The notes beneath the pieces are model-generated. The model had not been told where the DNA came from and did no database searches. It saw nothing but the letters and a program-made list of their open reading frames with translations. Below are positions 5,703 through 53,253 of a stretch of 64,000 nucleotides of DNA, one piece after another (the stretch's first letter is position 1; every line of letters begins with the position of its first letter). The stretch covers positions 124,001-188,000 of the forward strand of contig CP075495.1 in the NCBI GenBank assembly GCA_021613535.1, read 5' to 3'. The position numbers were made by a program, and so were the translations under genes. The stretch comes from Adineta vaga. Its lineage: Eukaryota > Animalia > Rotifera.

Positions 5703-5734
5703 CTGGAACCCATGATGGTGGTAATTCCAGTAAC

Positions 5735-16220: not shown

Positions 16221-17054
16221 TTGCAATATTCTTCAAGCTCTGAAAATAACATTAATATTTATTCAACTGATGTCGAAGAATTCAATTCACTTCATATTGA
16301 TAGTGCAGGAGATGCAAATATTCAATTGCAAACCGCTGAAAAACTAGAAGATATTGAAATAGCTTTAACTTCAAAAGAAATATCCGTTTTACTTATTCGA
16401 TTACGTTATTGTCACTCTTTAACAAGAGTGTGTATTGATCATGTTTGTGAGTTGCTGCAATTATTAAAGGTACCAAATGCTCCACTTAGTTTTAAAAATA
16501 TTGAAACATTGACACTTTGTGCATATCGATCAACTACATTCCCTAATAAGGCAATCATATGTCCTTCCTGCTATAAACCATCATCAAATCTCAAAATGTG
16601 TACAAGTACGACCAATTGCGATTTACAATCGGTATTCGTTCGAGCACCAACAGTAAATTATACTTTTGCATCTTGAACCTCAAATTAGATCAGTAATGGA
16701 ACGAAATTCAATAGTTAAAAGAAAATCCAACATATGTTCTATCTCGGATAGTACCGATGGTCTAGTATATGAAGATATACTTAAAAAGGAATCTCAGCCA
16801 TTTGTAACTTTATTGATGAATTCTGATGGTGGTTTGACGAAAGTAAGTTCAACATCTGTTTGGTTGACTACTTTTATTATTAATGAATTGCCACGAAGAT
16901 TACGATTTCTACCTGAAAATATGATAATAGGTATGATCTCATGCGGAGGAATGAAACCAAAGAAAGAGGAAATGTCTGTATTGTTGTTTGACCTTGTAAA
17001 AGAACTTCATCGGCTTGAAGAAGGTATTTCTCTATGTCTTAATCACATTAATGA
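16221..17054 (+). pseudogene. EnSpm/CACTA(CMC)-type transposase, 5' fragment, cut by element A
   Basis: CPSC zinc motif, LEPQI, DSTDGLVY, LLMNSDGG..SVW....INELP..LRF..ENMI. The frame ends ...NHINE and resumes DNIEQ at 29775. Confidence 0.8.
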
Positions 17055-18836
17055 GAGTTCATGGGGAATTTGATTTTGTGGCAAATTCAAATTTGATCGA
17101 AAATTTCGAAAAAATCAAATCGTAAATTAAGTTTAGTAATGAAATAGGTAGGCGACTTAACATTTCTGTTAAGCAAAAGTTTATTTACAATCAATTGTGA
17201 TTAACTAGAGAAATCAATATCGGTATAGTTGTATTTGTGTTCTTTGTAAAATAGGTGGTATAGTGGTATAGGTGGTCTTAGCAATATTAATGTTACTTCG
17301 GTTTCAGAGGTATATAGTTAGAATGTTTTTTTAGCAGATTCTAGTGGTACACAATTTATATCCGTGATATTTTATTGAATATACGATTTTTAAGATAGCT
17401 ATGTAATTATAGACAGTAAAGCGTGAGTGAAAATGAGCTCCTTACTGAGGTTAGAGACGTTGTACGAATAATAATTATCTTGATGTATACGATGTCAATA
17501 GTTGAATTGCTTGTAAAGTGGAAAGTACATCACTAGGAAAAAATACTTGTTTTGTGAGAATGAAATGTTCTGATAGATCATGGTTGTGTTGATCGGATTT
17601 TAATAGTTGAATCGATTTAACCAAGTACATTATTAGTTTTATGTTTTTAACGTGGGTTTTGATTGAATTCAACGGTATTCTGCTCATCTGTATTCAAGAG
17701 GAAGTATTCGATTTAAATCGTACGCTTTGTCTTATTTTTCCTGCCGTATATAAATTTAAATGAAAATATCTACATAAGCGATAGATATAGAGAGTGATTC
17801 TATACGTGTCAGACAGAAACGTATTGCGGATTTTTTTGTATCAACGTTTCAATTCAGATGCCTTCTTATAGAAAGTTTTGCTCGTTGATGTAAGTGGTGA
17901 TGAAGCTAAACGATATACTCGAAATTATTTCACAAAGAAGCTTATACAAATATTTTAAAACGGATTATGGACACTTCAGTTAACGCTTTTCAGATGATTA
18001 TCGATTTTTGGATTGAAAATAAAAGAACTTCTACTATGATCATGTTGAGAACACAGTGTAAATGCCATTAGCTGTCATAATGACAGTTAATATATGAGGT
18101 TTTCGTATCATTTAGAATCCTCCAATAGTAAAATTGCAGATAGGTGAAAAGAATTATGAAAGATATCAATAGAAAGATTTTTATCAGCTCATATCATCTA
18201 ATAGATATTCAAATCTTCTTTATCGAACAATAAAACTAATAATTTAGATTGCATATTATGGCTCTTAAATGTATTTTTTGTAGTGACTACTTTTCATATA
18301 TAATACATATAATATACAATCAATACAATGATTTTATTATTTGTATTAAAATCAATTATAAAAGTATGATCTTTAATTGAAATTTCAGTTATTTCTTTAT
18401 TCGTTCGTTTATCGTACATATTATTATCATAACATCCATTAGGATACGTTACATAAGATAAAAAATTCCACGGCGTCATTTAATACTTATATGTTGATTT
18501 CCGGCGACATCTTTATACACATCAATTTTTGGTGCTAACGTTCAATGCATTAATAAAATTGTATTTTGAAAAGAAAAAATAATTTCTTGCTTTTTTCTAA
18601 ACAAATCTAGTCTTGAATAGATGCTTTTTTTTCCAACTTTTAGTTGGCTGGACTAGTAGAAGAGAGATACGTTCTTTGTTACGAACATTTTCTTTATTTC
18701 TATTGCCGTAATAAATAGTCCGTCGATTTCAATCCATTTTGTACATTATAATAAGAATACATTTGTCCAGGTCATTTCCATTATTCAGATAAAATTTCTT
18801 TGTTTTATTCGATCTATATAAATACCACAATTTTAA

Positions 18837-20405
18837 GAGACAGTCCATGACTGGATCGAGCACTGCCGTCATACAAAAATTTTTGACCCCCCTTTTTAAG
18901 TATCGCAAATGAAAGAGCATGAAAAAATATACATAAATCCAAAGTTTCAGCTTTTTTGAAGTTACCTTTATATGGATTTAAAGGTCAGCTTCTTCAGTAG
19001 GTCGATTTGATTATTTTTTATTTTTTTATTCTATGGCGGCTTAGTATTTGATTAATTTCTCATTCAAAAATTATTCAATTAATTTGAGCAATATGTCAAA
19101 CGATAGAGCGAATTGAGCTCTACAAAACTACATATTTAGAATATCTTCAAATTAGTTTAAAATATGACTATAAGTGAAAAACTGCCAAAAAACCACCAAA
19201 TTTTTTTTCAAAATTTGGAGTGGTTTTTTAGTGTTTTTACGATAAATTGGGCGGAAAAAAGTTCAGGCCGACAAAGATTTTTTATGGATTCGATAGAGCA
19301 AAAGAAACTGCACAAGATAGACCTAAAAAAGAACCCCAAAAACATGCGCATAGTACCTTAATTTAGCCCAAAAGATTAACAAAAATCATTATTTTTTAGC
19401 ATTTTTTAAGGATTTTCAGAGAAATATCTAGGATTTTGACTTTTTCCATCTTCAAGTACCTAAAACTTTATATACCATTAGATGCAGAATTAAAAACTGA
19501 ATCGTTTAGTGGTGGTGTGAAATCATTTTGTGAACTCTTTTTTTTCGTCAAAAATTTGCCTGAGGTATCCTCCCACCCAGGAGTGACGCAAAAAATGAAG
19601 TTCGGGATGAACCTTGTTTTACCACCGGCAAACAGCTCTAAGATGGTAAAACGATAGAAAGAAAGAAAATGACACACAGCTAAACAAATTTTTGACGAAA
19701 AAAAAGAGTTCACAAAATGATTTCACACCACCACTAAACGATTCAGTTTTTAATTCTGCATCTAATGGTATATAAAGTTTTAGGTACTTGAAGATGGAAA
19801 AAGTCAAAATCCTAGATATTTCTCTGAAAATCCTTAAAAAATGCTAAAAAATAATGATTTTTGTTAATCTTTTGGGCTAAATTAAGGTACTATGCGCATG
19901 TTTTTGGGGTTCTTTTTTAGGTCTATCTTGTGCAGTTTCTTTTGCTCTATCGAATCCATAAAAAATCTTTGTCGGCCTGAACTTTTTTCCGCCAATTTAT
20001 CGTAAAAACACTAAAAAACCACTCCAAATTTTGAAAAAAAATTTGGTGGTTTTTTGGCAGTTTTTCACTTATAGTCATATTTTAAACTAATTTGAAGATA
20101 TTCTAAATATGTAGTTTTGTAGAGCTCAATTCGCTCTATCGTTTGACATATTGCTCAAATTAATTGAATAATTTTTGAATGAGAAATTAATCAAATACTA
20201 AGCCGCCATAGAATAAAAAAATAAAAAATAATCAAATCGACCTACTGAAGAAGCTGACCTTTAAATCCATATAAAGGTAACTTCAAAAAAGCTGAAACTT
20301 TGGATTTATGTATATTTTTTCATGCTCTTTCATTTGCGATACTTAAAAAGGGGGGTCAAAAATTTTTGTATGACGGCAGTGCTCGATCCAGTCATGGACC
20401 GTCTC
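18837..20405. mobile_element. Non-autonomous foldback element with ~720-bp TIRs (Sola3- or Kolobok-like)
   Basis: 18837-~19558 is the near-perfect reverse complement of ~19686-20405. Ends are GAGAC...GTCTC, flanked by ttaa / tcaa. Confidence 0.85.
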
Positions 20406-20523
20406 TCAAATAATTCAAATGCATTTACAAGAATTAGTCTGTCTGGAAGATGTATTTCTATCTTTAAATTTCTAATTGTTTTTTTACTATTTAGATAAAA
20501 CAAATCTGATTTTATGATATTTT

Positions 20524-23500
20524 ATGGCAAACAATCGAGCATCATTCCATGCAATTCCTAATGATTTTGCATCAATTCTTGATACAAACTTCCAACAATT
20601 AAATTCATTATCGAATTTTGATGTTGAATTTCTTGATAAAGAGGATGATTGGTATCTACTGTGTTTTTTAAAAGAACAACAAAGTAATGGTCATCCTTAT
20701 GAAGTAACATTTGCTGGTTTGAATTCCATCATTGGTACATTATCTGATGAATCGTGTTTTTATAATCCAGTTAATAACAGTATTGGTTTCTAGAATCAAA
20801 ATCACCATTTGTTAGGTGAAAGTGGTATGTGTAATTTTCCTTCAAAATTCAACTAGACGTGTATATTTCTAATGACTTCTAAAAACTCTGCATAACTTCG
20901 AATAGAAATCATATGTTGAGAAATAAAATTAGATATTTCTACATTATTCGTCTTGAATGATATTCTGTTAATAACAAATAATTCAGTGATGACTTTTTTT
21001 CACGAAAAATCTTGCCGAAAGTTATCTTTTGATTGATTATATTTTAGTACTAACAATCATTCTTTACTTTAGCGTCCAACAAAAGTTCAATCTGCCAAGA
21101 AGTGTCAGCTGCTTTACAAAGTGTTATTAACTCATTTCCCGATCGATATTCGTCTGCAAAACAAAATTTAAACAATGAAAATGATGATAATGATCGCAAC
21201 ATTCATCTGGAGAAAAATAAAAACAAATCACAAGAATTAGAATATTCGTTGGTGGTTTCCAATACAACAGAAGTAGCATTACTTACAAATTTAGCAAAAA
21301 TTAATACTATCCTGTTACATTCGGATGGAGATGTTGCACTTGGTAAACTAGGTTACTATGAACAAGGTAAAAATGAAACATCCGATGGTGTAAGTTTATT
21401 TTGTGACGCTTCCGACGGTATTCGTGGTGGTTTTATTCGAGGAACAGGTGTATCACAAATAAAAATCAACCGACCAGTAGCACTTTTTAATATGTTTGTT
21501 GCAAGTACTGGTACAAAATTAACTTCAATGCTTCAACGTTTTCATGAAACAAGAATTCAAGATGGTGTTTTTGCACGTGTCTTCTTTACATGGTGTCAGT
21601 CTATTAATGAATTACCAAAAATCAAATCAAAATCCTTTACACATATTCCTTCATTTTCTCATTTCGCACATTCAGTTGCTTATTTTTTTAACAATCAATT
21701 TCAATTTCGTTACATGGCAAATAAATCTGATGTTAGTGAAATCAATTCAGAGTGTGAATATCATTTCATATTTTGATCATAAGTATCAAACATAAGGATT
21801 CCATAACTTTTCAAATCTGTTGAGATTCCTTTTGAACAGCGTATGATATTCTTCACAATCTTCTTTCTATGAGTTAGTTGCTCATTTTTATCCACAAATA
21901 TGTGTTATTGAGTGTTTCGTTTTTTTTCACATATAGGTATCGATTATGAAGAACGTTTATTAGAAGAACTGAAAAAACAAAACGTTACAACACCAGCAAC
22001 ATATGCTGCTTCTTTGACCAGTAGTGATGTTCGAGAGGATGATTATTATGATAGTCAAAACCACAAACGTGATACTTCTTCTTTCAAGCTTCTGGCATCT
22101 TTAATCAATGATTGGTGCAAATCATCAAATTCTTCTGAAAAACATTTAAAATCAATTTATCGTAAAGTTGTGAACATGTTATCAAAATGCATTTGGTCAA
22201 TGAAAGTTATTCGTATTATATTTCGATTAATGAGCAAGAACTTGAAGTACATCGATCAAAAACAAGGTGATCGATCAGCATCCAATTTGGTTTCGATTCA
22301 TGTATCATTTCAACATGCTATGGAAAGAACAATAAACAATTTTTTATTGGCTGAGTGCCAGCGAATTGATCATTCTAAATGGATCATATGGTCAGATACC
22401 AATGACGTTACTGTGGGTTTTACTTGGTATCAACGTAAAATGCTAGTTGTTGAAAATTTGCTCACACTGCAACCATTGAAAGATGTTATTAACGAACGAT
22501 TAGGGAAAAAAACAACTGAAAAGTTAGTTCATGTTATTCTACAGACTAATGAAGAAACAAATTCATACATTATTTTCATTTAGAAATCAAACGGATTATA
22601 AATTGGACAAGGCCAAAACAAAAATAATGAATTTTTCAGTTGTTTTTTTTACTTGAACATATTTAACCAATAAACGACAAGATGCAGGATCAGGACAGTT
22701 TTGCCACTCTTGTGATGTAAAGCCAGATGAAATCTTGACTGCTTTAATCGACGATGGTTTATTGATTGGTGGAAATTTTATTAAAAGTGGTCGTTCTAGC
22801 AAAGAAGGTTTACAGTATTCATCTTTCTGTAAACAGTTACCGTCAACAATTAAAAATAATCCTCGCATTCAACAAACGTTTGAAGTAAATATTACCAGAT
22901 TTCATTCTATTGAAACATCCGTAACCGAGAATAAATTCAAGACTAAAAAAATTCATTCTAATGTCTTTATATAATGAATACAATTCTATGGATATTTTCA
23001 TAATCGAGACTTAAAAATGAAAACTAAATCAGAGCACATTAACAGATAAAAATATATGAACGCATACCGATCATAATTAAAATAATGTTTCTTTTTGATT
23101 TAGCGATTAGGTTTGGACATGTCACGTTATGAAAAATCATTTGAACGTCAATATTTACCAATGGGTAACGAATTTACTAAAGAAGCTATTGAATTCATGA
23201 AAAACAATGATGGCTTTGTTCAATATTATCATAACTATTATAAAGAAGATCAATGTTTTCAATCATTCTGAGAAATGGTACACGAACGTGTCCGTCTGGG
23301 CGAAATCATACCAGATAAAAGTTCGTATAAATTTACATACATCATGAATTCTCATTTTCATCCGTGGATCTTTTTATTTTGTGTTTTCTCGTAGATAATT
23401 CATATTCAAGTGGTCATGTACTCGCCAATAACCAACAAAATGAACATATTCAAAAGGAGAGTATGATTGAATTGGACAATACTCCTTTAAATATCATGAA

Positions 23501-25581
23501 AAATACAACAAATATAATTAGTACTGCTTACTGTGCTGAAACCAACAATGGTATTACTTCATAATTTATGACAGGTAATAAACTACGATAATAATATTAT
23601 CTATATCCTTGTTTAGATCAACAAATCCAACCAAATGTTGAAGAACCTCATATTGATTATAATTCAGTTAATATTTATAATACAACAGGAAATGAACATC
23701 ATAGTTTAACATCGGCAAATTTGACAAAAAATATTGCTGGTTCCAATAAACAAATGCCGGCAGCAAATGATACATTAGATTCTGTTTATGACAATTCCAC
23801 AAACGAACCATCTATGGAATGTAAGTGAATAGGAAATATTTATTTCATTTGTTTATAAACTTAATTTGACAAAATAAATGATTTTCTTCTTTTCAAACTT
23901 TTGTATTTGCATAGATTCTTTTCAACATTGTTCGCTTTCTCCATTTACATCTAAAACAACAGCGTCATCGATTATCATTGGTGTTGCAGCAGCTTCAGGT
24001 GATTTTTCTGTTCTATTGTTTGAAATAATAAAAAGAACGTTCTGTTAAAATCAATCAGAGAATAGAATGATGAACTACATTGCTAGTGTTCATACAAAAG
24101 ATCAAAACTGTTTATAGTATTACTACTGTGGAACATATTCGTTTATCTTTTGATTCTTTAGTTGCAAAAAAAAATCAAATTACTACCAATGATGAACAGC
24201 TTGAATATGATGAGCCATTTGATTCAATTGCCATGGCTGATAAATCAAGTGAAAATGAATTCGTTAACAATTCAATATCAACCGGTGAGTTTTATTCTAC
24301 CATTTTTCAAAGAAACACTCTCTGTTTTTCTATTTTCTTATAGATGACCAAAATCCAACAGATCAACGCATGTTTCCGAATATAAATGTATTGGATAATA
24401 TTACAAATATTATGGGCACATCTTCAACAAGTATTTTACAACATCACACTGAACGCTTTTTGATTGAGATCTGGATATTTAGATTCTAACGATCAAGATA
24501 TTCCAAAAAGAAAAGGACGTGGTCGTCCAAGCTCAACAAATGTAACATCGAAGAAATGGTCCACAGAAGGTAAAAGGTTTTACTGTGAATTTATTGATGA
24601 GCGTCGATGAAGCGAAGTAATTCAAAACAATCGAATACACCTCTTCATTAATGATATTCTAAGAGAACTTCCATAAAAGTTCAATTAAAATTTTCCTATG
24701 AATAGAAGTAACGTAAGAAAAATTGTGTCAAATTTAGACAGCTACTGAAAATGATAAAGATATAGTTTTAATAAATGAATAAATGATTGAGAAAATTTTC
24801 ATTTGACTTTAGTTTGAGACACTCCTATATCCGTTATTATATAAACAAATGTTGCAAAATGTTATGTATCTTTAGAAGTCAACAATCTTATTATGAATCC
24901 AAAATCTTCTTCCATATGGAAATCGATTATTCTGAAACGACAGTTTATTGTTGGTACATCGACTGATTTGTTCAAAATGATTCCTGCCAGACTTTTTGAT
25001 GAAAAGTCTCGGTTTAAACTAATTGATTTTCTTGTACTGAAAAAAATATTAATCAAAGGTGATTGGTTTCGTGATGCAAAAGGTGCTTCGATTAATGGCT
25101 TTTTGAAAGGAAGTCCAATTGATGCTCAAGTGGCGATCAGTTTAGTCGATTTTGGTATTGATATTCAAGAGTATAAACTTTCTTTAAATCCAAATTCAGA
25201 TACCAAACGACATATTGATGGGAAAATGATCAATCAATCGTATTTATTTAGCAATGTATTTTAAGAACAAATAAACAATGACGAATGGCTTAAACAGAAT
25301 ATGGAAATCAACGAAAGATTTATTTACTTTACAAGTGAATTAACTCAAACCACCTCTAATTATTGTAAGTGACAAATGTTGTTTAATTCGAAATTTAACA
25401 TTTATATACTGTTCTCTCTATAGAAACTGATCGATTTCAACAACAACGAAAAGAAAAGGCTCGACGAACGCTAACAAATAAGAGAAAAAAAGCTGAGGAA
25501 TTGCAAGAAGAAACTACAAATATATGTGGCACCGATATGCCAGTCAAACGTCAACGAAAACCAAAACTACGTGATGATTAG
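20524..25581 (+). pseudogene. AAA+ ATPase gene of element A (multi-exon, premature stops)
   Basis: Walker A LLGES-A|SNKS (intron 20825-21072), ILLHSDGD, LFCDASDG..FIRGTG, FVASTG, DGVFARVFF; AT-hook KGRGRPS (~24510-24535); basic tail. Stop at 20791 and others. Confidence 0.8.
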
Positions 25582-26491
25582 GATATGTATTCTTTTGATC
25601 TGAAATCAGCATCATGCACTTTTTTCTCTTAGTACACAATCTTTATTTATTATTTGATGAGTTTTCATTACTAAGCTGTGAAAATTGTTTTTATGTGTAA
25701 ATCTGTTTTCTACGATGACACATTCTTTTGTTCCTTTCACATTCAACTGAGTTTAATAAAATTCGTTTTGTTTTCTTTTTCTTTTTCTTTTTCTTTTTCT
25801 CGTGTAATTATTTGTCTGCTACAGATACGTTTTCTTTTTCTTTCGTGAACAAGTTCAGTATCTTTTAGTCCATAACTTTTCCATTTCTAACTATAGATAA
25901 TTTGTTTTTCACCTTTTCTTTTCTGAATATACTGTACTTCTTTTTTTGTGAATTATCTTCCCGGAAGATATCGAAACTTCTTAATGAATTCATTTGTATA
26001 TTTTCTGTGGTTTAATTTTACCAACGCAATTTCATTTTCTGAAAACATATCTTATGTTATTGTTCTCACAAGATTTGTAATTAATCATGATCATAAGAAA
26101 AACATGTAAATTACAACAATAAACTTTATTCTCAAGAATTCAAACTTAGTTTCTTTTGTACTAATCGGATGAGAAAATCATTCATAACAACGATTAGAAT
26201 TTTTGAAGGGATTTTTAAAAAATGTCTCGTATTTTTCATTAAAAGAATGTTGGTAAAGAATATTCATATTTTATCATTGAAAACTACAATCTCCTTTATT
26301 CTTTAAATCTTTGTACAACATTGTATTTTCTAGAATCACCGATAAATTTGATCCTTAGTTGAAATTTATCTATCAAAATCTCATCTATCAATTTTTTATA
26401 TCAACAGCCATTTGAAAATTCGAAGTATAACATAGAAATAGGATAATTTTTTTGTCCACTTTTTGCAATATTTTTATTTATTTTATCTCAG

Positions 26492-28944
26492 ATGTCTATT
26501 AATGAAACTATATACCAACGTCTCGAATTAGCATTTCCAGAAGAAAATAAACGAACTCTCAAAGCCGCCACTATCATCATCAATGTTGGACATCTAATTC
26601 TAGCAAGTTATGTTTATCCATTACCACCTCCTTGCACGAACGAAGAACGACTCGACTTTATATGTTTCATTTTAAAAAAAGAAACTGGTATCGATTATTC
26701 CAGTAATGATGTACTTATTGCTCATAATATCTTGATGGGTAATGAAAATGTACAACAAGAATTGAATTTTGATTGTAGCATTGAGACAATAGAACATTAT
26801 TTGAACCAATACAAGCATTCTCAACCTCAATCTGCATTTGCAAGAAATTTTACTCCTCTTCTTCTGTTACTGCGTCGAACCATATGTAGTATATGTAATG
26901 CATAATTGAAAATAATTTTCCAATCATGTGGTCATGTCGTTTACTGTACAAAAGTTCAATCGTGTCTTCTTTATAAAACCGACTGTCATCCATGTCGTCG
27001 ATCGAATCGTATATCATCTATTTACTTGATAGATCAAAAGAAAACACTCGTCACTGCTAAATCACAACAATCTGATTTTATACATTTTTCTGGTTTAACT
27101 GTCTTTTCGAAAGAAATTCTCATTTCTTTTTCTTCGCAATTAATTGATGATTATGCCACTTTTGAAGGTTTTTCTTCTGCTACGATAAAAGTCTTCAATA
27201 GACTTCATCCCAAAAGGGAAGATAATGTTACAGCAGAGAATCTTGCTCAGAATTTAGAAGCTGTTTGGCTATATCATGAATTAACAAATTTTATATTAAT
27301 GACGAGTAAATCAACAGATATTCGTTTTCCATATGCTATGAGTGAAGGTCGAACAAGAATCAAAGGTCAACAATCATTTAGAGCAATATTTATTGAAAGA
27401 AACTTGAACTGGATTTACCACGTATTTACTACTTTCTGATCAAATCATGAAATTGTTTTTGGTACCTGTAAATGTGGCAATTGCTCGAAAGTTGTACTTA
27501 TTGATGGTCATGAAAAACCGTATGTTTTTTTCTAGAAACTAGTTTTCTTTTAACTTTGTTTAGAATCAAAGATGGAATCATAGAAAACTATGCTTTTGAA
27601 CGATCCATTTGTTTTCCATAGATTTAGATTTCATCACTTAGAATAAAATAATGACTTAGTTATTTAATCTTTGAAGAATGATTTACTAATTCATCATGAG
27701 CTTTTTATTTAGAATGTTTAAAAATACTCAATATTTCTCTTATTAAATAAAAAGAATGTTCTTTTACCTGATTTAGACTTCGTTTAGTGTGCAGATATGA
27801 TAATGTTACCAGTATTATTAATGCTGCCGAACTTGGACCAATAAACAAAGGTTGTCCATATATGCCAAGAAGAAGCAAATCGGATAATCAAGGATTGGAT
27901 GGTATGCGTTTAATTTAGTCATTTGATTTAATATCATTCATCATTCTTTTCATATGGATTGTTGAGTTGATGGAAAATAGTCTTGAGCTATTTTCAACTG
28001 TTTTAACGGTATGAAAATTGAAAGAGAAAACATTAAATTCCTACATGAACTTTTCACTTAAAAACAACTTCTATGAATATTTTTTATGTTTAGATCATGT
28101 ATATCATTATTGTGATTATCATCGAAACAAACATGCTGAAGAATTGTCAATGGAAACGAAAATGTCAGATAATGAATTACAAAAATATTTGAAATATCTC
28201 AAAAAAATTGATCGTAAGGAATCTCAATGTAATGTTGGCCGAAATGATATGAAAGAACGTTTTGAATCAAAGAAACGATCCATGGGTTTTATTGCTTCAT
28301 TCTTAAACTGTGGAATTATTATTGGCTTTTCCAATTCAGTTAATCATGAAGGACCTCGTAAAATCACCGATCATCTTTTGACAATGTTAAAACTTGGAGC
28401 AAAATTACCATCGTTATTGGTCTATGATGCTGCATGTCAATTACATAAATTCTGGAGGTATAGATTTGGTACCGAATACATGCAAGAAACTAAATATTCA
28501 CAACAATTAATGGATATGACATTAGTAACAGATCGATTTCATAATACAGTACACATAGGTAATTTATGCAAGACTTTATTTAATCCTGACTCCGAACAAA
28601 ACAAAGCAAAGTTTATTGGTATCGATACAAGTATTGCTGAACAAGCATTTTCGTATCTCACCAATTTTAAAAGATCTCTACGAAGTTTTTCTTATCCTAC
28701 AGCAGCATTGTTTACAATTGTACTATTTCATTTAAAAAACTGTGATACAATTAATCAAGAGCCTGCTCGCCAATGTCTTATTATTAATACTCATCTTGAA
28801 AATGTGATTCAGAATCAACAATCTTATCAAAGTTATTGTGCATTTGAAACACTAATGATGGAAGATGAAGTGAATGAATATAATTCTAAGGTTGATGATG
28901 AAAACATAGATACTATGAATACTGGAAACGTTGAAAAGAAATAA
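26492..28944 (+). pseudogene. CxC-KDZ transposase of element A
   Basis: Cys cluster ICSIC..CHPC; CSKVVLIDGHEK (~27480-27520); GCPYMP..YCDYH; LVYDAACQL, VTDRFHNTVH, CK..FNPD, TSIAEQAFSYL. In-frame stops at 26903 and 27437. Confidence 0.88.
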
Positions 28945-29774
28945 AATTGACAGCTATCATAGTGAAATTCATTTTTTTTAATTTTCTATCAATTTGTTTT
29001 CGAAACATAAAAGACAGATGTAAAAGTTATTTGTTATCTATTCACATATGAAAAACTATGTAACTGCATTTTGACTTAACATCACATAAGATATAAAAAC
29101 AAATGAGCTAATACTCGCTTAAAATCCTTCACAGCGTATCGATGGAGAATTTTGATACATTTCTATTTTGAATGTATTCATGTCTTAAATTAGAATAAAA
29201 AAAAGATTTCGACATGATATTCAAGGTATATTGAAATATAAGTGTAATTAAATATAAGATCTGATAACAAAATTCTCCTTAGCCTTTCCTTCGGATTTAA
29301 TTACTCGTATTGTAGAGTAATGAACTTTTGCAATATAGTACAAAAAAGATAGACATAAGAAAGATCTATTTCAACAATACCATGTGTTTATACGACATGT
29401 AAGATTACCACATAATTGTCTTTTTTTATAAATGCATTTACATATTTCTTGCTACAGATTTTTCCTCTATACTGTTAACATTTCGCTGACAGTTAATGGT
29501 AACATGATGTATATTCAGACCCTATTTTCCATATACACAACACACAAGAATTTCTTAAACCACATATCAATGAATGTTAGATATTTCCAGTTAGATGGTA
29601 ATTCTTAATTTAAAAGTTTGCGTAAAAGTATTAACTGATCCATCCACAATACCACCTATACCGCTATACCACAACAGTGATAATGCCATTTGATATTTAT
29701 TTTTTACAAATTCATTTGCTTTTACAGTAAATGATTTTGCTACAAAATCATATTCCCCATCATATGACTAATGA

Positions 29775-29903
29775 AGATAATATTGAACAAATCTTTAAAA
29801 TATTTTTACTTGGTTGTGTCAATGATAAGCCTGCAACGTCGCTTCTATTAAATCACGACGAATCAATTGGTTTTTTTGGTTGTTCATATTGTACTATCAA
29901 AGG
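29775..29903 (+). pseudogene. EnSpm/CACTA-type transposase, middle fragment
   Basis: FLLGCVNDKPATSLLLNH...GFFGCSYCTIKG (D.PA...G..GC..C motif), followed by donor gtaatt. The next intron holds the hAT element. Confidence 0.8.
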
Positions 29904-41400: not shown

Positions 41401-42210
41401 AGATCTGTTCTTTTCACGAAGACAGATCTTACTCAGATATGCAACAAACCAGGAGTACGGTTAGAAGCAGTGAACCGTCTAATTGCAGCTGAGTTACTTA
41501 TTCATGGAGACAACTATTGGTTGGAAACAACTCATTCTAGAAAGGCTGTTAAGAAAGATTCGAAGTATCTTTTACGAGAAGGATGGATGAAGTAATAACT
41601 TCAATAAAGTGCTTTTTCGCAAGCAAAGTAGATTTGATTTTTTTTCTTTGAAGGAAGGCTCCTGAATTACTATCGAATACATCCAAATTCAACTTCATTC
41701 AATCATTGCAACAAAATGTAATCGTTTATGTTCTTTGCACGAGTTTTGATCGATAATAAAATATCTGATTCGATTTTTTCATAGGCGAATACATCATTCG
41801 AAGATTACATGAAGAGCTTTTATCCGCATCAAGAAACTAATGTATTCACTAACAACAATTGGACATTATCAGATGAATGTGTCAAAATATTTCAATCAAA
41901 TGACTTTTACAAGCAACATGTTCGATGGGATATTGAGCGTTTTAGACCATCAGATGTACTGAACGACGCAAGTGTCGACAATGTCAAAGACTTACCATTG
42001 ACACAAGTTTCACATTCATTGCCATGTAATAGGAATGCAGCAGATGATATATCTCAAGTATTACCAGAAGAAGCATCTAATAATGCTGCAGAAACAAATG
42101 AAGTAATAAGCGCAATACCGATATCTACACGACCGAAGCGAAAAGTGCCGTCAACCGAAAACCAGGAAAATGAAGTGCGTACACAGCCAAGAAGAATGAA
42201 GAAAAAGTAG
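38438..42210 (+). CDS. AAA+ ATPase gene of element C (about 9-10 exons, open after splicing)
   Basis: Canonical Walker A LLGAS-G|SGKT (intron 38724-38939), IFLNDDAD, LILCGYDG|FLNSIRTTG, LIAATGG, DGTHNRFIY; basic tail RTQPRRMKKK. Confidence 0.88.
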
Positions 42211-42591
42211 CAACTGGTTACAATGATATTTCGAACTTTTTAATGATTCGATTTTTTTATTGATTTTTTTTATTCCATCGCATTTTATTCATCGAATGCT
42301 TTTAGATTTTTAGTTCTTCTTTTACTTTATGGACATACTACGCTTCTATGGGAAGTTGAAATAAAAAGGATACCATCATTATTTGAACAAAAACGAAATC
42401 TCGTTGGTTGTTAAGCTATCATGTAATTATGAAAAACTGTTTTTATTGCAATGCATATAAAACATTAAATGAGAAAATAAGGTTATTATTGCAATAGAAT
42501 AGTGATAATGCGCACATTACCCACATAAATTATAAATAAATGCTCTCTGAATATTATTTTTTTCCATATATTTTCAGATAAATATTTCAAT

Positions 42592-44641
42592 ATGAATACA
42601 AATTTGTCAACCCATACACTTGTTGAAATCACAGATGTAGAACATGCTCTGATATTAATGATGAGAACAATGCCTTTGGATGAAATAATGTGTGTGATGA
42701 ATTTGAATAGGTTTTTCCCACAAGAAGTACCTAACAAGTTTCATCATATCAGGAATATCATTAATTTACATTTTCATAAATCATATGAAATGTATCATAT
42801 ACGAATGATAATTGAATTTGTTTCAACGCAATCAGTGTATGACACAATGTTTCGCCAATATTCTGTACATGAAATGATTGAAAAATATCAGGCGAATAGT
42901 ATTGCTGAATCGGTTAATGCACATGAGTTGTATTTGCAACCATTTACTACCAACTGCATTCAATGCCAAACAGCATTGAAATTGGAATATACTCATCGTG
43001 CTAAAACAGTTATGTCATTAATACGAAATTATAAAGCTCGTAAGTGAATATATCATATTTATTGATTTGAAATAGATCATTTGTATTCATCTTAACAGTT
43101 ATTGCCACTTGTTATTGTGCAACTTGTGATATCGAAATATTTCCAAATTTTTTCATACATAAGAAAAAAAAATTTATTACATTAGAATCTATTAAAAATG
43201 ATGAATTTATTTACTTAAGTGGCAATCAGATACTTGATCAAAATTTGCTGATTGATTTTGATCAGCAACTAATTCAAAACACGGTGTCTTTTGAAGGATA
43301 TACCAATGCCTATAACTCCAAAATTGTATTAATCAACAGTAGACGAAGTCATAATGTTTCTCCTGTAAATGAAAATGATACTTCGTAAGATGCTAATAAT
43401 TTTATTTCAAATATAACCACACTGTGATTGTTTTTCTAAAGAGTTTTAAATGAAAAATATTTTCAAATGGCATGGATTCTAACTAATATTGCCAAGTTCA
43501 TTTTTATGGCTGGAAATGAAAAGATTATTCAAATACCAATGTCTGTACGAGATGCTGATGAATGCAACACATATTTTTTTAAAATCAAGGATGATCTTTA
43601 TAAAAATTTTGTTGCTTTTTGGACAAATCATCAACGCTTTTCAAAAAACTGCAATCCTGAAACATGTTCAAAAGTTTTCGTTGTTGATGGACATCAGAAA
43701 GCCAATAGATTAGTGTGTCAATATAAAAATGTGTTTGATTGCACTATATCAGAGCTAGGACCAGTCCAGATGGGATGTTTGTACTCACCGTTAAGAAAAG
43801 GTACGTGGCTAACTGTATGCCTAGATACTCATTTATATTTTTTCCATAGCTCCAGGTATTGATCATAGGTATTGTCAGAATCATCAACCAACACTATTGG
43901 CTTCAGAAGATCGAATAACAAGTGTGACGCATCAGGCAGTTAAAGAAGATAAAGAACACGTATTAGACAGATCAGCATTAAAGGATTACATAAAACCTGA
44001 TGGCCAATATGATGATAAACTTTGCAATGTATTTCGTTCTGGAGCAAATGTTGCATCGAAAGTCAGTACTTATGGATTTTTGGCTACATTTTTAAGTTGT
44101 GCTGTTGTAGTTGGTTTTACAGAGCAACCCTGTTCAGAAGGAAGTTAGTGCGAAAATTCAGCTTTTCTTCTTACCAGTAATTAATGTACCTCTTGATTTT
44201 TCTAATAACAAAATAGTGCGCCGAGTTCTTCATCATATTCTAACAATAAGACGGTTTGGTGAATTGCCAGCTGCCATGTGTTATGATTGTGCATGCACAT
44301 TGAAGTTATTCATAAAAAATCATTTCGGTACGGAAGATCTAAAGTCAACAAATTTTACAAAATTTCTTGAATCTTTAACTATGGCGATTGACCGTTTTCA
44401 TGTGAAGAATCATACAAGAGCAATGTGTAAAACGGTAATGAGACCTGATCATTCATCCCATAATGAGATTTTTACATCCATCAACACACAAGTTGCCGAA
44501 CAAATGTTCTCTTACTTTTCGCAATTTAAACATTCATTTCGAGGCTATAATTATCCCAAATCAACGATATTTTATACACTTCTTTTCCATTTAAAAAATT
44601 GCAAGACTACAGGTATTAGTTCTTTTTATCAAAGAGTTTGA
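42592..44641 (+). CDS. CxC-KDZ transposase of element C (5 exons, open after splicing)
   Basis: TNCIQC..CYCATC..FPNF; CSKVFVVDGHQK; GCLYSP..YCQNH; SEG|MRRV; CYDCACTL; AIDRFHVKNH; INTQVAEQMFSYF. Confidence 0.9.
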
Positions 44642-44845
44642 AATTTTTTACCAACTTTCTCACGATAAATTCTTACTCTGATTTTTTACTTAATTCTTAT
44701 AAATTTCCTTCGTAATCATTATTCGTTTTGTTGAAAAATATATTTTTTATCGAAAAAACTAATCAACATCATGAAATTATGAGCAATATATATAAATCAC
44801 AATATACTTTCCATTTCGAGATTTAATTTACAAGACGCAAAAATT

Positions 44846-44963
44846 AAATTTCTGATTTCTAATTGATTTCAAATGATGAGCAGAGTAAATTTCTGATTCC
44901 TGATTTCTAATGGATTTCAAATGATGAGCAGAGTAAATTTCTGATTCCTGATTTCTAATGGAT
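44846..44963 (+). repeat. 48-bp tandem repeat (~2.5 copies) in the right arm of element C
   Basis: gagtaaatttctgattcctgatttctaatgga at 44883 and 44931. Confidence 0.85.
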
Positions 44964-47277
44964 TGTTTTCAGTCATATAATTTGAAATAATAATTCATAC
45001 GTTAGCATAGGGCTCTGCATATTATTTCAGTTCGCAGTAACTCTACGAAATGTTAGAATTTCAAAATTTTCAAAATTTCAAAATTTTAAACTTTACAATT
45101 TTCAGAAATTTTGACATGTCATCTTCAAAATTTGTATTAGTTTTATATTTGCCATCCCATGTGAAAGAGAAGAATACTCTTTACGCTCATTTCTATAGAC
45201 ATCGATTGATTAATAATTTCCTATTTAAAGAATTAAAATGACTTACTCCATTCGAAGCACCAATAATAGAAAGACGTGGTTCAATCAGAATGGTTAAACG
45301 ATCAGCTGTTGCTTTTACATATTTTTTTGGACAACTGAAGACAGTTTGGACAAATGATTTACAATTAATCCTACAAGTAAATATAAAAGCAATTAAAAAA
45401 TTAAATCTGTTTTACTAACATCGTGTTGGTGGATTTGTCTTTAGATGGAAAGATGTTTGTCTTCTGACTGTCATCATCGAATTCATCAAATAAGCCTAAT
45501 ACGTTAGAATGTTCTGCTAATGCAGCAATACAACCTGGACCAGTAAACTAAAAAACATTATATATAAATATATATATACATCTATATAAAATGATTGATT
45601 ACTAATTGATATTACCTCATTAAGTACTTTTTCACAAACGTATACAGTATTTTCATTAGAATTTGTTTTCGATATTCTTTTCGATCGATTTTTTCCTAAA
45701 TTTTTAACCGATGTTTCGGAATCATGTGATTTCATTTCCGTTTCAAGTTCATCAATTTCATTACAAGCATTGGAAATTTCCAAGAATGTATCCGATTTAC
45801 TATAGCCTAACAAAGTACAAAGCAGAATTAACTTTTATCAATAATTGGTGCAGTATTTCATACCAGAACATGTGGTAATCAACGTATATGACGCCAAATT
45901 CTTTTCCATGTACGAACAATTATCGAGCAAAATAGTTGATTGATTAGAAAAGTATGCTATAGATGATGTTGTTGTCAAAGCAATGATACAAGAATCTTGA
46001 AGCAAAAATTTTGCTTGTGTATCAAAAACATTTGCTAAATTTTCACCATAAATTTCAATAAGGTCATAATTAATCGTGTTGGCAAAGTCGAAATTACGCC
46101 AAAAAAGATTTTCTGGCGTGACACCACTCGTCATCTAAATAAAAAATAAAATTCGCCAATTATCTACTCGTAATAAATAATGCACATTTCATATGAACAC
46201 AATTCATTCAGATAACTCAATCATTTTGTTACAAAATTTCAAGATAACGAAAAAAGATCAGTTAGATGCATCTAATAATCACAAGCAACATTATTGCAAC
46301 AAACATCAGGATAATCTTATCATAATTTCTTATTCGAGCAAGTTCACTGTTAAATTACAATCTTAATTAATGTTCACTTTTGTACATAAAAACATCATCC
46401 CTTGCAAAACTGTATCGACTCGACATCTATCGACTCAAAACATTTCGTAATTATACTTATTAGCACATGCTACGAACTACAACATTTTTTTCAACAACAT
46501 ACAAATATTCAATTACCGCAGAAACAATAATAACCCGTACTCACATTTACATCATTACTTCAACTCGATAAATATCACGAATAGAGATTTCAAATTTGAG
46601 CATTACTTCACAAAATATTTTATAACACATCAGCATAATTTTTTTTCGTACACAAAAACAGTAAAGAAAACTATTTTCAGTAGTTTTATATAAAACTGTC
46701 TCTTTCCACCTTTCATACTCATGTACACATACTAACTCCTAACTATTCCAGCTTAGTGTCACCTTCATCAACAGTCAATCGCCATATTCTGTCATAACTT
46801 CTAATTCATTTTACCAATACCCAGTTTATTCAAATGGTTTCGGAAAAAGTTACCATAGCTAGTTCATCTTTCACTAACCCGCATACCAACTGACAGAACC
46901 ATAGCAACACCTACAAAACAAGATCTATCACAGCAATAGTCGTTCGACTTAAAAAAATCCCACTCCTTACAGATGGTACTTGATTTAATTTATGACCAAA
47001 GAGCGCAACTCATTCTACCACCAACTCAAAACTTGACGCAATAGTCATCATCATAAATACTAAATTCAATCGACGAAGGCCGAACATACCTTCACCCTTT
47101 CTCATTCCCAAAATCAACAAACAGAACAATTATTTGAGGTGTAGTACGGCCGTTTCGGCCGTTTCGGCCGAATCGCGAGAAACCCATTTACACGCAACCC
47201 TCAATGCGCATATCTCTCATTGAGGGTGCTCGGAAATCGGGACCCACCTGAAAACAAAGATCCTTTGATTGCGGGAC

Positions 47278-47725
47278 GATGCATCTCCCAAGGGATATGC
47301 ATATCCCACCACCCCTAGACCCTGAAAGTGATTTAAAAAAATATCATCATTTGGAGACGGGAGATAGAGATGCGGGATATGGGTCATCTCCTTAGGGAGA
47401 TGCATCATCTCCCTAGGGATATGCATATCCCACCACCCCTAGACCCTGAAAGTGATTTAAAAAAATATCATCATTTGGAGACGGGAGATAGAGATGCGGG
47501 ATATTGGTCATCTCTCGTGGGATATGGGTCATCTCCTTAGGGAGATGCATCACCTCCCTAGGGATATGCATATCCCACCACCCCTAGACCCTGAAAGTGA
47601 TTTAAAAAAATATCATCATTTGGAGACGGGAGATGGAGATGCGGGATATGGGTCATCTCCTTAGGGAGATGCATCATCTCCCTAGGGATATGCATATCCC
47701 ACCACCCCTAGACCCTGAAAATGAT
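47278..47725 (-). repeat. Same 124-bp unit inverted (~3.5 copies, one with a 21-bp internal duplication), right subterminal repeat of element B
   Basis: gcatatcccacc at 47299, 47423, 47568 and 47692; reverse complement of the left array. Confidence 0.93.
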
Positions 47726-49409
47726 CAAGAAATATGAGATAACATTGTGTATGGTGCTCGGACAGCGTCTCTCGCATATCCACAGGCGTCTCACGCCATC
47801 CCCGATCTGCGGGATATGTGACACCACTCACAGGAACAGGTGGAAGTAACATCATCAACACCATCACCTCAAACATTGAAGAAAAAAAAGGAATTTTTCG
47901 TAAAGAGTGGTTGTCTATCACCGAATATTCCTCGTGGTTACAAGAATTAAAACATGATTTAACAAAAGCTCGATGTAAATCTTGTCTCAAAACCTTTTCT
48001 GTTCATTGTGATGAAAAATCAGCTGTAGAAAAACATATGCTTAGTAATGGACATAAAAATTCGATGAAATCATTCGAGAGTAAATCTTCATTGTCGCAAT
48101 TTATAACTCCAGAAAACGAATTAGATAAAATTTCAGCAGCTGAATGTGTGCTAGTTTTTCATGGAGTGAAGCATGGACACAGTTACAGATCTCAACAATG
48201 TACCACTGATTTAGCACGATCCATATTTTCATCTTCATCAGTTGCCAAGTCAATGTCACGTGGTAAAACTAAAGCTCGATCCATTGCGTGTAATGTTCTT
48301 GGTCCTTATTTTACAAAACAAATTGTTGATGATCTATTAAAAGCAAGATTTTACTCATTATCAGTTGATGCATCAAATAAAGGAAATTGTACAACATATC
48401 CTTTTGCAATTCAATACTTTTCTGAAACAGGTGTTAGTCAAGGTAAAAAATTATTAGTATTTGATATTTTGTATCTTTATTCAATATCTAAATAATTTTT
48501 CTTTAACATTTAGGGCTTATTGATTTTATTGAAGATCCTCATGAATCAGCTGATGATATATACAGGAATATTGTAATGATTATAAATAATCACAAATTAT
48601 ATCTTGAAAATTTAACTAGTTTTGGTGCTGACAACGCCAACGTTAATTTTGGTAAATATCATTCAGTATTTGAATTATTGAAAGGAAAAGCACCTCATCT
48701 TGTGAAGGATAAATATGAATGTTCTTCTATGACATTTTAATTGATTTTATTCGAACTATTCCTTTTGACTGTTCTATTTTAGGCAATTATCATTGCCATG
48801 TGTTGCACAGTGCTGTAAAAACTTCACACGATGATTTACCAATTGATATTGAAACAATTCTATGTAAATTATATTCTTATTTTTCAAGATCAGCAAAACG
48901 AGTTGAAAAATTAAAAGAATATTTTGATTTTGTACAAGATGATTTTCAAGTAAGTTATTCATCTCCATCTGCTGTGTAATATAATGAGTAAACCATCTAC
49001 AAGAATTTAATGTGTTTGTTTATTAAGGTTTTATTAAAACATGTAAACACCAGATGGTTAAGCTTGCTTCGATCGATTGAACGTTTACTTGATCAATATG
49101 AGCCGGTTAGGTTATATTTGTTGTACGAAGGAACAATGACAAAAGTACAACGACTTTTGAACTCTTTTTTTTCTGATTATGATGGTCAATGTACTTCGTA
49201 TTTTTTACAAAATGTTCTTTCTGAAAATCAAAAAGCTGAATTAAAATTGCAACGTACATATACAACAGCAATTGATCTTTATCCTATTATTACTAATTTA
49301 ATCAATAAATTGCAACAAAAGCTGTGCGACAAACATTATGGTCATAATACACAATTATTATTAGATCGTATAAAGAAAACTGATGAAATTAAACATGAAG
49401 AAATAATAA

Positions 49410-51629
49410 CCGAGGTGATTTGATCCGACCTGTAGATCGGACATCGGATTGCGTCGGAAACCGTCGGATTCACATACAAATCCGACCGGAACCCAACAGA
49501 CTTTCACCGGAATCCTAACCAACGGATTCCGATGCGGATTGCACCGAGAGGAATCCGACAGAAACCCGTCACAGAACAATATGTGGTTTCAGCAGAATTC
49601 CGATTGCAGAAAACATCGGATATTCACAGTATGCGACCGCTTCTTATCGGAAAAAAACAAGCAATTCCGGCGATCAGCAATTTCGCCCCAGATTTTACTT
49701 GGATTACAGTATATTCAACACAGAATACATCGGATTACACCTATATTACAGTATATTTCCCAGATTTCACCTAGATCATACCATATTAAGCCTTGATTAC
49801 ACCAGACTGCGCCTAGATTACAGTATATTTTTCAAGATTTCATGCAGATTATACCTATATTACACCAGATTACGCCTTGATTACAGTATATTACACCTAG
49901 ATTGCACCTATATCATAATGTGTTACTCACGAGTTTTCCCAGAATAAACCATATTCGTCGACAGCGTAATTGGGTTGTGGAATACTTCACAGACGCAGCG
50001 GCGTACTCTAGACTACGAGCAATAAATAAAATCTGTAATCTAGATTTCGGCGAAGTGAATAGATTACGCAAAACAGAGTGGTATATATAGGCGCGGAGGT
50101 GTAATCTAGGTTACACGCATTAAATATAATCTGTAAATGAATAATATACAAAAGTTATACAATGGATATTATAGCGGGCAAAAATAAAATCAAATATTTA
50201 CTGGAATATGATCAATATAGATATCGATTAGATTTTCTTTAAGTAAAGATCAATGCGCGATTCAGCATAGTCGTTTATAAGTAATTTTGCCAAAAAAATT
50301 ATTTTAGAATCGACTCTATGTTCAAAAAATGATTAGAAACTACCTTGTAGTTAATTCAAAAAAATATCGTTATGATCTGATATCTGTCTAATAGCTTAAG
50401 ATCACGGAGAGAATCTATCTCGTTTCTATTAGTATTACTCAATATTCGACGATTATTAATAATATTCAACCGAGATCCATTCTCAATAATCGGTTATAAT
50501 TAAACAATAGTTGTTCATCGTTTTTATATGGTCACTATGTTAAAGCAGAGTAACTGATTATACGCATTCCAATCGGTCTTGACTAATAGAGATTAGATTA
50601 TTTTGTGTCGATCAAAAATCAATGCAGACGGGTAAAAAGTATTAGCGTTTGATAAGAAGGATTGGATATACCGATAAATCCTAAGTAAATACTAGAATAT
50701 TAGATTCTCAAAAATTGGAAATTTTAGAAGATTCATTAGAAATCTGTAGATATGAAGATTTAATTACAACTTGAATATCAGTGATTTTATCACGATTTCG
50801 GATACTTTTCCGTAGTTTCTATCGAATTTTAGCTGTCTTTAATCATTCGTTTTCTATTTCTTTTTTAAAATGAAAAATCATAATCTGGAATCATTTCTAA
50901 TGATTTCTCTTTCAGAAATCATTTTTTCCCTCTACGTCAATGTATAATAGTATAATCAACATCAAAAATTACCTGTCATTTCTCAGGTATATTGTTTAAC
51001 ATTCAAACAATTATTTTCGCGATATATGATGACTATTTGTAATTACCAACATTTCAGAATTACTCTTGTATTTGGCACACATATAATCATAATCGTTATT
51101 AATTTTGATTTCGCTTGACAAAGCATATTGCACTAAGTTGCAAATGTAATTGAGAAATATTATTTCTTTCACTGAAGTCTAATCGTTATGCTAAATGACG
51201 TTTATAACTTTCCGATTATTTCCGATATGTACCTGTGACAAGTTCCTGGCGGATCTATATTGTCGGAGAGCGTTAAAACCCGATCAAAGGAACTCTTGTG
51301 TTCCTGTAGAATCCGACAAGTTCTGGTAGCAGGAAGTGAACGGTTTTATCTTGGAATCCGGTGTCATGTGAAACTGTAATTTCCGATAATTTCTTGACAC
51401 CGGATCACATCGGATCTGATCAGAAACAGTCGGATATGAGAATCGGATCTGATCAGTTTCGAATTTATGTATCTTGTCGGAAATTGCCGGATCCGATAAG
51501 CGGATATCAAGGGAAGTTAATAGATTGTATCGGGATCCGTTGACAAGTGGCCGACTGGATCCGATCATCCGTTTAACAACGGATTTGATAGGTCCCCGAC
51601 AGTATCCGATGGACACGTTTTGACCTGGG
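49410..51629. mobile_element. Non-autonomous CMC/CACTA-type element inserted in the hAT ORF
   Basis: Ends ccgaggt...acctggg with 2-bp TSD aa. Removal restores EEII-K-SIDAFV. Both arms are rich in tccga/tcgga subterminal motifs. Confidence 0.75.
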
Positions 51630-51828
51630 AAAATCAATTGATGCATTTGTTCAATCAGTCATAGACTATATTAAATCTTATTTCGATGAACAAAATGCAT
51701 TTTATAAAAAATTATCATTTTTCAATGTTCAGTCATTTCAATTTCTTACTTGGAAAAATGTTTTAGATATTGTCAATCTGATTCATGTGAACGACTTAGA
51801 TACGGATCAACTTTATAGTGAATTCAAT

Positions 51829-52419
51829 CATATGATGCGTTATAGCGATTGCCTGGAAATTGTATGTATTTTGGATATCAGATAAATTTCCGGAAATCCA
51901 AAAATTGAATTCCAAACAGCCTATTATAGAATTTAGTTCTCACTGCCATAATGGACATAATCGAGAATTTCCCAATTTCCATCATGGAAACTGCATATGA
52001 TGCGTTATAGCCATTCGCACGGTATCCTGTGTGTTTTGTATTCCAAAGCAATACCCGGAAACTGGGTTTATCTCGATGAGGGTGCTTTGAAACGTGATGA
52101 GGGTTTATCTCGATGAGGGTGCTTCGAAACGTGAGGAGGGTTTATGTGTTGTATCCCACTCACATTGATTTCTGAAACGAACTATAGGAACTTTTAGGAC
52201 ACTCCTTTTAACAACTGCGCCGTTCTTTCGTGAATAAAAATCTATCCAATATCATCTATTGGACATAATGGGCAGAATGGACATAATTGAGAAGTTGCGT
52301 ACAACGTACTGAAGCGTTGGATATTGTCGATTATGCCCAGCATAAACAAGTGTCCATAATGAACCTAATTTCCATGATGGAAATTGAGTTTCCCGGAAAA
52401 CACTATAACGCATCAAATC
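51829..52419 (-). mobile_element. 591-bp MITE with KDZ-element-like ends and 8-bp TSD
   Basis: TSD aattcaat (51821-51828, 52420-52427). Ends catatgatgcgttatag... and ...ctataacgcatcaaatc. Removal restores YSEFNHIKCL. Confidence 0.75.
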
Positions 52420-53253
52420 AATTCAATCATATTAAGTGTTTATATGATGACTTGAACAAGAAACATATAACGTTAAATGACCAGATTCAATCTTATATAT
52501 TGAATAAACAAATGCATTCTCTTACATCAAAAACGAATAATCATATTGTTGTATGTGATGAAGATGATACCAACATTGTTGACGAAATCATTTCGTTGTC
52601 CAACAATCGTGATGACAACTTGATTAGATCCGATCATTTATGGGCGTATTTATTAAATATTAATCCAACTGCAGCACCAAACTTGAAAAAAATTATTTGT
52701 TATATCTTTTCAATTCCTTGTTCGAATTCTCATGTGGAGTCCATTTTCAGTCATATGAAACAATTATGGTCAGATTATCGTAATCGAATGGACATAAAAC
52801 TAGTTCATGCTGAACTTTCAATAAGAATGAATTCTAACTATTTTTGTGAAGCATTTTATAAACATATTCTGTCTCAAACTGATTTGTTGAAACAAATGCG
52901 AAAAAATACAAAATATTAATAATTATATCGACATGATGTTTTGCGTTTTATTTATTTTTTCTTATAGAATCTCTTTTGACAAAATATTATGTTTTCTAGT
53001 TGGTTTGTTTTTCTCTTTGTGAATTACTTTCAAATTACGTGAAAGCGTTTGAAATTGCGAACATATTTCCATGTATTCTCTATTACCCATCGATACGTTT
53101 GACTTTTGTGTCTCTATATTGAACTGAAATTTCTTTATAAATAAATTATAAATGAACGAACAATATACCAATAAACTATTGAATGACAATATACAAGGAT
53201 AAATTGCATCAACTTACAAAAATCAATGTTTCTGATTTCTTTCTGATTTTGAG

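Follow-up and report, generated by a model that had tools for sequence, protein, structure and literature searches.

Nested KDZ-like transposons with dissimilar tips and an ATPase-like companion gene in the bdelloid rotifer Adineta vaga

The window analysed here, a 64,000-nucleotide stretch of Adineta vaga contig CP075495.1 (positions 124,001 to 188,000; assembly GCA_021613535.1), is AT-rich (about 31% GC) and is composed of a stack of nested mobile elements. We describe the boundaries, target-site duplications (TSDs), nesting and gene content of three transposons in it, A, B and C, and of a gene-less miniature inverted-repeat transposable element (MITE), together with the conservation of their tips in relatives from other contigs. 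All four lie within the interval 17047-52427, whose first base is the start of the left TSD of A and whose last base is the end of the right TSD of the MITE (Table 1). C is nested in B, a complete hAT element carries both B and the MITE, and the insertion order is hAT, then B, then C. In A and C, open reading frames (ORFs) for a P-loop ATPase-like protein come first and transposase ORFs lie downstream; the proteins most similar to the ORFs of the elements, at 58-85% identity, belong to Rotaria, Didymodactylos and Adineta assemblies and to metagenome contigs. In these elements the inverted repeat is least symmetric at its tip, a feature shared by most relatives from other samples.

That the structures are not due to chance was borne out by a blind scan for 8-bp direct repeats (at most one mismatch) around 30-nt inverted ends, in which pairs whose pairing extended outward were rejected. 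Its top non-artefact matches were B (25/30), the MITE (24/30) and A (24/30), with C weaker at 18/30. The original prediction that such ends escape finders of terminal inverted repeats (TIRs) holds only in part, because a TSD-plus-TIR scan as tolerant as this one picked up three of the four. Tools that demand a perfect terminal match will nevertheless mis-place such boundaries, which is a warning for annotation. The TSDs of A, B and C cannot be extended by even one base, and the 8-bp duplication, a trait of Zisupton/Dileera elements, was found in perfect copies around B, C, the MITE and the complete relative at locus L017, and with 7/8 agreement around A. When A is excised with one TSD copy, its host frame stays open for at least 95 amino acids across the junction, and after the same operation on the MITE a host frame of at least 100 amino acids runs through.

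The predicted tip sequences (A, GAGTTC/CATATG; B, GAGTG/CAGCA; C, GAGGACG/CATGGGA; MITE, GATTTG/CATATG) are all present at the expected places, and so are the mismatched outer bases with pairing only further in: when the two ends of each of six complete elements were compared, positions 1-7 agreed at 2-5 of 7 and positions 8-30 at 16-21 of 23. The TIR by which KDZ and Zisupton elements are recognised is found at positions 8-30 of all complete elements and not at tips 1-7. Set out in triplets, nearly all ends read S-A-K, N-N-N, R-T-G (B has an N2 middle), with G or C at position 1, an invariant A at position 2 and mostly G or T at position 3; positions 7-9, R-T-G, open the part that is symmetric between the ends. 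Because GAG-type and CAT-type tips both fit this scheme, they are variants of one pattern and not unrelated sequences. The hAT element, our internal control, has a 15-bp TIR that is fully symmetric at its tip, unlike A, B and C.

Relatives were collected as 36 loci (L numbers) from a metagenome scan and from contig look-ups, and related ends in them were located by BLAST of the window ends; the TSD-plus-TIR scan, when applied by itself to these loci, revealed no new element that was convincing. Similarity to the window ends stops exactly at the element boundaries and the tip types recur: five further families retain GAG or GAC upstream or CAT downstream, and in total GAG occurs at eight ends from seven families and CAT in five families and the MITE. 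L017 is a complete 8.3-kb element (2818-11148) with the TSD ATCGATTT; its coding DNA is about 70% identical to that of C, and the two share 7/7 tip bases upstream and 6/7 downstream, compared with 17-18/23 at positions 8-30 and about 45% further in. Since identical tips stand beside unrelated flanks and homology ends at the tips, we conclude that the outer bases are part of the mobile unit and that tip types are inherited. A and C also share a motif near their upstream tips, TGGCAAAT(T/C)TCAAATT(T)G, which begins 24 nt from the tip in A (17079-17095) and 7 nt from it in C (36719-36735), and which may be a transposase-binding site.

Protein searches were run exon by exon, on single unspliced ORFs. 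The transposase ORFs carry DGHQK, VYDA and DRFH..H motifs, and in Pfam searches of them no competing transposase family scored: KDZ (PF18758), the affinity proposed for A-C, was the only one to do so, with matches, all below the curated cutoff, in C (ORF 44111-44641), in L024 (ORF 9429-10217; 22.7 bits, E 8.8e-5) and in four of the 16 homologues examined (best E 3.8e-5). These E-values, sub-cutoff as they are, consistently point to KDZ, and the low scores probably arise because exons were searched singly and not as a spliced model. Pfam found no hAT domain in the ORFs of A, B and C; such domains occur only in the hAT element 29955-54510, whose ORFs lie at 47818-48495, 49010-49423 and 52287-52919, the last with a Dimer_Tnp_hAT match above cutoff. 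SWIM and TET/JBP modules were not detected in the rotifer elements, Cys-rich stretches in A ORF 26906-27439 gave only a weak RING-like match, and searches of PDB sequences with the ATPase and transposase profiles returned no matches.

The ATPase assignment of the original prediction is weak: A and C each hold a P-loop ATPase-like gene, the C protein aligns with the A-type ATPase profile in hhalign (E 3e-4), and homologues of the A ORFs occur in Rotaria and Adineta, but all matches to DUF3987 (PF13148) are below threshold. Pfam did not find DUF3987 in the L024 ORFs, an NCBIfam search of the ATPase was also empty, the AlphaFold2 model of the ATPase ORF was unusable (pLDDT 36), and in B the likeness to the Walker A region is faint. 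In prokaryotic mobile elements, DUF3987 domains are predicted to be helicases (PMC5862659). An ATPase-like gene that recurs beside the transposase deserves closer attention and could be either cargo or a helper.

Table 1. Elements, ends and genes in the window, and ends of relatives (locus:position). Tip bases are given first, followed by the adjoining inner sequence; relatives' downstream ends are read inward.
Feature	Position	Strand	Sequence or basis
Element A, two-gene KDZ-like transposon, 12,712 bp	17055-29766	+	tips, TSD, blind scan, open empty-site frame
A upstream tip	17055		GAGTTC, ATGGGGAATTTG
A downstream tip (reverse complement)	29766		CATATG, ATGGGGAATATG
A left TSD	17047-17054	.	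ATTAATGA; right copy ACTAATGA at 29767-29774
A ATPase-like gene, ORFs 21102-21776 and 21912-22583	21102-22583	+	Pfam DUF3987, E 7.6e-5, below curated cutoff
A transposase ORFs 26492-26905, 26906-27439, 28018-28944	26492-28944	+	VYDA, DRFH..H motifs
Element B, 17,457 bp including nested C, about 9 kb without C	30373-47829	-	tips, TSD, blind scan
B upstream tip (reverse complement)	47829		GAGTG, GTGTCACATATCCCGC
B downstream tip	30373		CAGCA, GTGTCACATATCCCGC
B TSD, perfect 8 bp	30365-30372 and 47830-47837		ACAGGAAC
B subterminal tandem array, 124-bp unit	30476-31132	.	inverted counterpart 47282-47735
B transposase ORF with DRFH motif	31948-32358	-	weak tblastn similarity to A and C ORFs, 22-29% identity around DRFH
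Element C, 8,450 bp, nested in B	36712-45161	+	tips, TSD
C upstream tip	36712		GAGGACG, TGGCAAAT
C downstream tip (reverse complement)	45161		CATGGGA, TGGCAAAT
C TSD, perfect 8 bp	36704-36711 and 45162-45169		TGAAAGAG
C ATPase-like ORFs	38438-40376	+	Walker A GSGKT in ORF 38918-39238; DUF3987 E 0.005, below cutoff
C transposase ORFs 42592-43047, 43467-43862, 44111-44641	42592-44641	+	Pfam KDZ on 44111-44641, E 2.9e-4, 21 bits vs cutoff 26.6
MITE, gene-less, 591 bp	51829-52419	.	tips, TSD, blind scan
MITE tip	51829		CATATG, ATGCGTTATAG
MITE tip (reverse complement)	52419		GATTTG, ATGCGTTATAG
MITE TSD, perfect	51821-51828 and 52420-52427		AATTCAAT
hAT element, internal control	29955-54510	+	15-bp tip CAGGGTGGCCAGATC, 8-bp TSD GTTTATAT
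L005 upstream end, A-like	L005:504		GACTTC, ATGGGGAATTTG; similarity to A stops at tip
L019 upstream end	L019:7754		GAGGTC, ATGACAAATCTC
L017 upstream end	L017:2818		GAGGACG, TGGCAAAAC
Downstream ends, three unrelated flanks	L008:5111, L010:5067, L019:10772		all CATACC, ATGACAAATATC
L021 downstream end	L021:6268		CATGGAG, TGGCAAATCTC
L017 downstream end	L017:11148		CATGGGG, TGGCAGATT

The MITE is flanked by a 13-bp direct repeat, AATTCAATCATAT, at 51821-33 and 52420-32, which makes its register ambiguous by up to 5 bp; the register originally predicted is the most parsimonious, as it sets both arms in phase and agrees with a second, internal copy of the CATATGATGCGTTATAG end that begins at 51994. 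This internal copy (51994-52061) is 72% identical over 68 nt and has no TSD of its own. A 37-bp tandem repeat follows at 52064-52137.

Several further structures lie in or beside the elements. A contains a 1.58-kb foldback at about 18829-20409, with arms 99% complementary and both ends starting GAGAC(A/G)GTCCATGAC; no clear TSD was found for it, and since it is missing at the homologous position of the relative L036, it was inserted into A. C has a tandem array of a 109-bp unit (36857-37810) upstream of its genes, B has its 124-bp arrays at both ends, and in L005 and L024 both ends carry arrays of short units, of about 9 nt in L024, which break assemblies. The host of A is an ORF at 16666-17054 and 29775-29910, weakly like Transposase_21 (Tnp2, a CACTA-like family), whose frame across the empty site reads ...LNHIN before the junction and EDNIEQIF... 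after it; the hAT element is inserted slightly further along the same host. Elsewhere in the window, a Ty3/gypsy-type long terminal repeat (LTR) retrotransposon at 4143-12202 has 167-bp LTRs (4143-4309 and 12036-12202, 99% identical), a gag ORF and a 1302-aa pol ORF (protease, reverse transcriptase, RNase H, integrase), and a 522-aa ORF on the minus strand (60052-61620) with a strong mannosyltransferase match (PF11051) is probably a normal gene of the host that borders the transposon cluster.

Among the remaining relatives, L019 is an internally deleted 3-kb copy with a GAGGTC and a CATACC end. L034 and L035 (Adineta steineri, CAJNOI010000297.1) hold an A-like copy with ATPase and transposase homology over about 11 kb, in which no termini or TSD could be recognised and which is probably old and degraded; L033 is a remnant, and the Rotaria loci L001 and L002 yielded no element ends. 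We attribute a 20-nt inverted match in L015 and L016 to chance. The protein and the A-type terminus were also sought in viral contigs and in bacterial and archaeal genomes, and neither was found.

Taken together, A, B and C are likely to be KDZ-related cut-and-paste transposons of a bdelloid-rotifer lineage, with an ATPase-like gene upstream, a multi-exon DDE-type transposase downstream and an enzyme that tolerates either tip. Such elements would move by ordinary cut-and-paste through a KDZ-type DDE enzyme that duplicates 8 bp of target; the transposase would bind the segment that matches between the ends, from about position 7 (R-T-G), with the subterminal repeat arrays of some families supplying extra matching sequence, and we infer that it accepts either tip type. 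The outermost bases obey a loose S-A-K rule with an invariant A at position 2, which allows two tip types, GAG and CAT/CAG, and most families have inherited one GAG-type end, usually upstream of the genes, and one CAT-type end. Cleavage or assembly might conceivably treat the two types differently. The MITE appears to be a non-autonomous element with tips resembling those of A.

Several findings weigh against this reading. All KDZ matches lie below the Pfam cutoff of 26.6 bits, on single exons, and cover profile positions of about 117-200, the C-terminal half; the CxC zinc module was absent from Pfam searches of the upstream ORFs of A, B, C and L024; and B is only a distant relative of A and C by tblastn. 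The DUF3987 match in A (ORF 21102-21776) reaches 22.5 bits against a cutoff of 27, and that in C (ORF 39699-40376) is below cutoff as well. At the ends of L019, matching TSDs were not found (CACATGTC vs ATTATTAT), which may reflect a rearranged or chimeric contig. The polarity of the tips, originally predicted as GA upstream and CA downstream, is seen in A, B, C, L017 and L019 and fails in two A-like families, L024/L026 (with differing flanks) and L029 (from Didymodactylos carnosus), where the end downstream of the transposase is GAGTTA followed by ATGGGGAATTT; at positions 7-40 this end is closer to the upstream end of A (28/34) than to its downstream end (24/34). The rule is therefore not universal, and these families are either symmetric or of opposite polarity. 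Their upstream ends lie off the contigs because assemblies break in the subterminal tandem array: L024-family contigs all begin inside an array of 9-nt units, and L036 stops about 850 bp short of the end. Finally, we know of no biochemical data or structure for any KDZ transposase.

Four other explanations of the ends, and one of the MITE, were weighed against the preferred reading. If the boundaries were misplaced, each element would in truth begin at its first paired base, and the outer 5-7 bp would belong either to the flank or to a longer TSD that has degenerated; the sole point for this is the a priori expectation that a TIR is symmetric at its tip, and the data refute it, since the 8-bp direct repeats enclose the outer bases, these bases recur unchanged in independent insertions whose flanks are unrelated (L008/L010/L019; L024/L026, GAGTTA; A/L005), and host frames close correctly only with the boundaries given here. 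The asymmetry could instead be a neutral inherited relic, in tips that were never homogenised, of a transposase that needs only the subterminal repeat and the A at position 2, a reading to which we give somewhat less than an even chance. It accommodates the invariant position 2 beside a position 1 of G or C and a position 3 of mostly G or T, the presence of either tip type on the downstream side (L024/L026, L029), Kyakuja and KDZx1 elements that are wholly without TIRs, and the various starts (GAC, CAC, CAG, CGG, GGGG) among the tabulated 5' ends of KDZ consensus sequences; it fits less well with GAG and CAT triplets that are kept, in the numbers of families given above, more strictly than neutral drift at three sites predicts.

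That same strictness, with tip triplets preserved between C and L017 where inner TIR and coding DNA have diverged, would suit the functionally non-equivalent ends of the original prediction, left and right as in Tn7, Mu or Ac, with the ATPase loaded or acting directionally from one end. The GAG upstream and CAT/CAG downstream arrangement in five complete or near-complete elements of three deep lineages, and the ATPase-like gene in A and C, also agree with it, but we regard it as improbable: GAG-type ends downstream in L024/L026 and L029 show that tip type is not tied to gene polarity, a polarity shared by three lineages would arise by chance with a probability of about 0.25, the class of the ATPase is uncertain, its DUF3987 match being sub-threshold and its model poor, and nothing connects the ATPase to the element ends. 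Improbable too, in our estimate, is a distinct KDZ-related rotifer lineage that needs one GAG-type and one CAT-type end, with the upstream P-loop ATPase as a helper that reads the asymmetry; if true, it would be a eukaryotic counterpart of the bacterial transposase-plus-ATPase systems. As for the MITE, its place within a hAT element, its 8-bp TSD, a length that hAT elements also make, and a tip that starts with CA could mark it as a hAT-type non-autonomous element unrelated to A-C, which we think unlikely given that its tips differ from its host's CAGGGTGGCC and match those of A, at 9/9 bases downstream (CATATGATG) and 7/9 upstream, with the same asymmetry.

The preferred reading, of a KDZ-related enzyme tolerant of either tip type, touches on elements that are among the least understood eukaryotic cut-and-paste transposons, and on published families that disagree about having inverted repeats at all. 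Nested and well-bounded copies, with relatives whose tips read S-A-K, N3, R-T-G, provide concrete substrates for end-swap and cleavage assays.

Among known systems, Ac/Ds and other hAT elements share the 8-bp TSD with the rotifer elements and differ in having another transposase family, with a hAT dimerisation domain that was not found in A-C, and, in the window's own copy, a perfectly symmetric tip. In Ac the 11-bp TIRs disagree in their outermost base, and one end cannot substitute for the other. Tn7, Mu and IS21-type systems combine a transposase and a helper ATPase with distinct left and right ends; the likeness, a transposase gene beside a P-loop ATPase gene and non-identical ends, is one of functional analogy only, and there is no sequence relationship. 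Closer to hand are Zisupton and Dileera, which make 8-bp TSDs (PMC12730594), and Cryptococcus KDZ1, which is 10.9 kb long, has several genes and an 8-bp TSD (bioRxiv 10.1101/2024.08.15.608186). With Zisupton/Dileera and Cryptococcus KDZ1-3 the rotifer elements, 8-13 kb long with several genes, share the 8-bp TSD, a length of 6-11 kb or more, a transposase gene of several exons that resembles the KDZ Pfam model, additional ORFs without a known function and TIRs of variable quality; they differ from Zisupton/Dileera in that the KDZ match is sub-threshold on single exons and no CxC, SWIM or TET/JBP module was detected, and from KDZ elements in an upstream P-loop ATPase-like gene that is not reported in the KDZ literature searched. 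Kyakuja has 7-bp TSDs and 5'-CA..TG-3' ends without an inverted repeat (PMC12730594), and in KDZx1 of Cryptococcus deneoformans no TIR could be detected (bioRxiv 10.1101/2024.08.15.608186); both resemble the rotifer elements in that the two ends are not inverted repeats of each other, which shows that KDZ transposases tolerate dissimilar ends. From Kyakuja the rotifer elements nonetheless differ in TSD length, in keeping a clear subterminal inverted repeat and in starting one end with GA and not CA. By the 5' starts listed in Table S1 of PMC12730594, the Dileera consensus sequences Zisupton-1_PGr and Zisupton-2_PGr (Puccinia) begin with GACC and other KDZ consensus sequences with CAC, CAG, CGG or GGGG, so that, as far as 5' starts can be compared, the GAC start is shared with the two Puccinia sequences. 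Asymmetric or missing inverted repeats have thus already been reported for KDZ elements, and the class offers precedents for dissimilar ends and, within those tabulated starts, for a 5'-GA start; the apparent novelty is a rotifer lineage that combines a conserved GAG/CAT tip pair around a good subterminal repeat with an ATPase-like companion gene.

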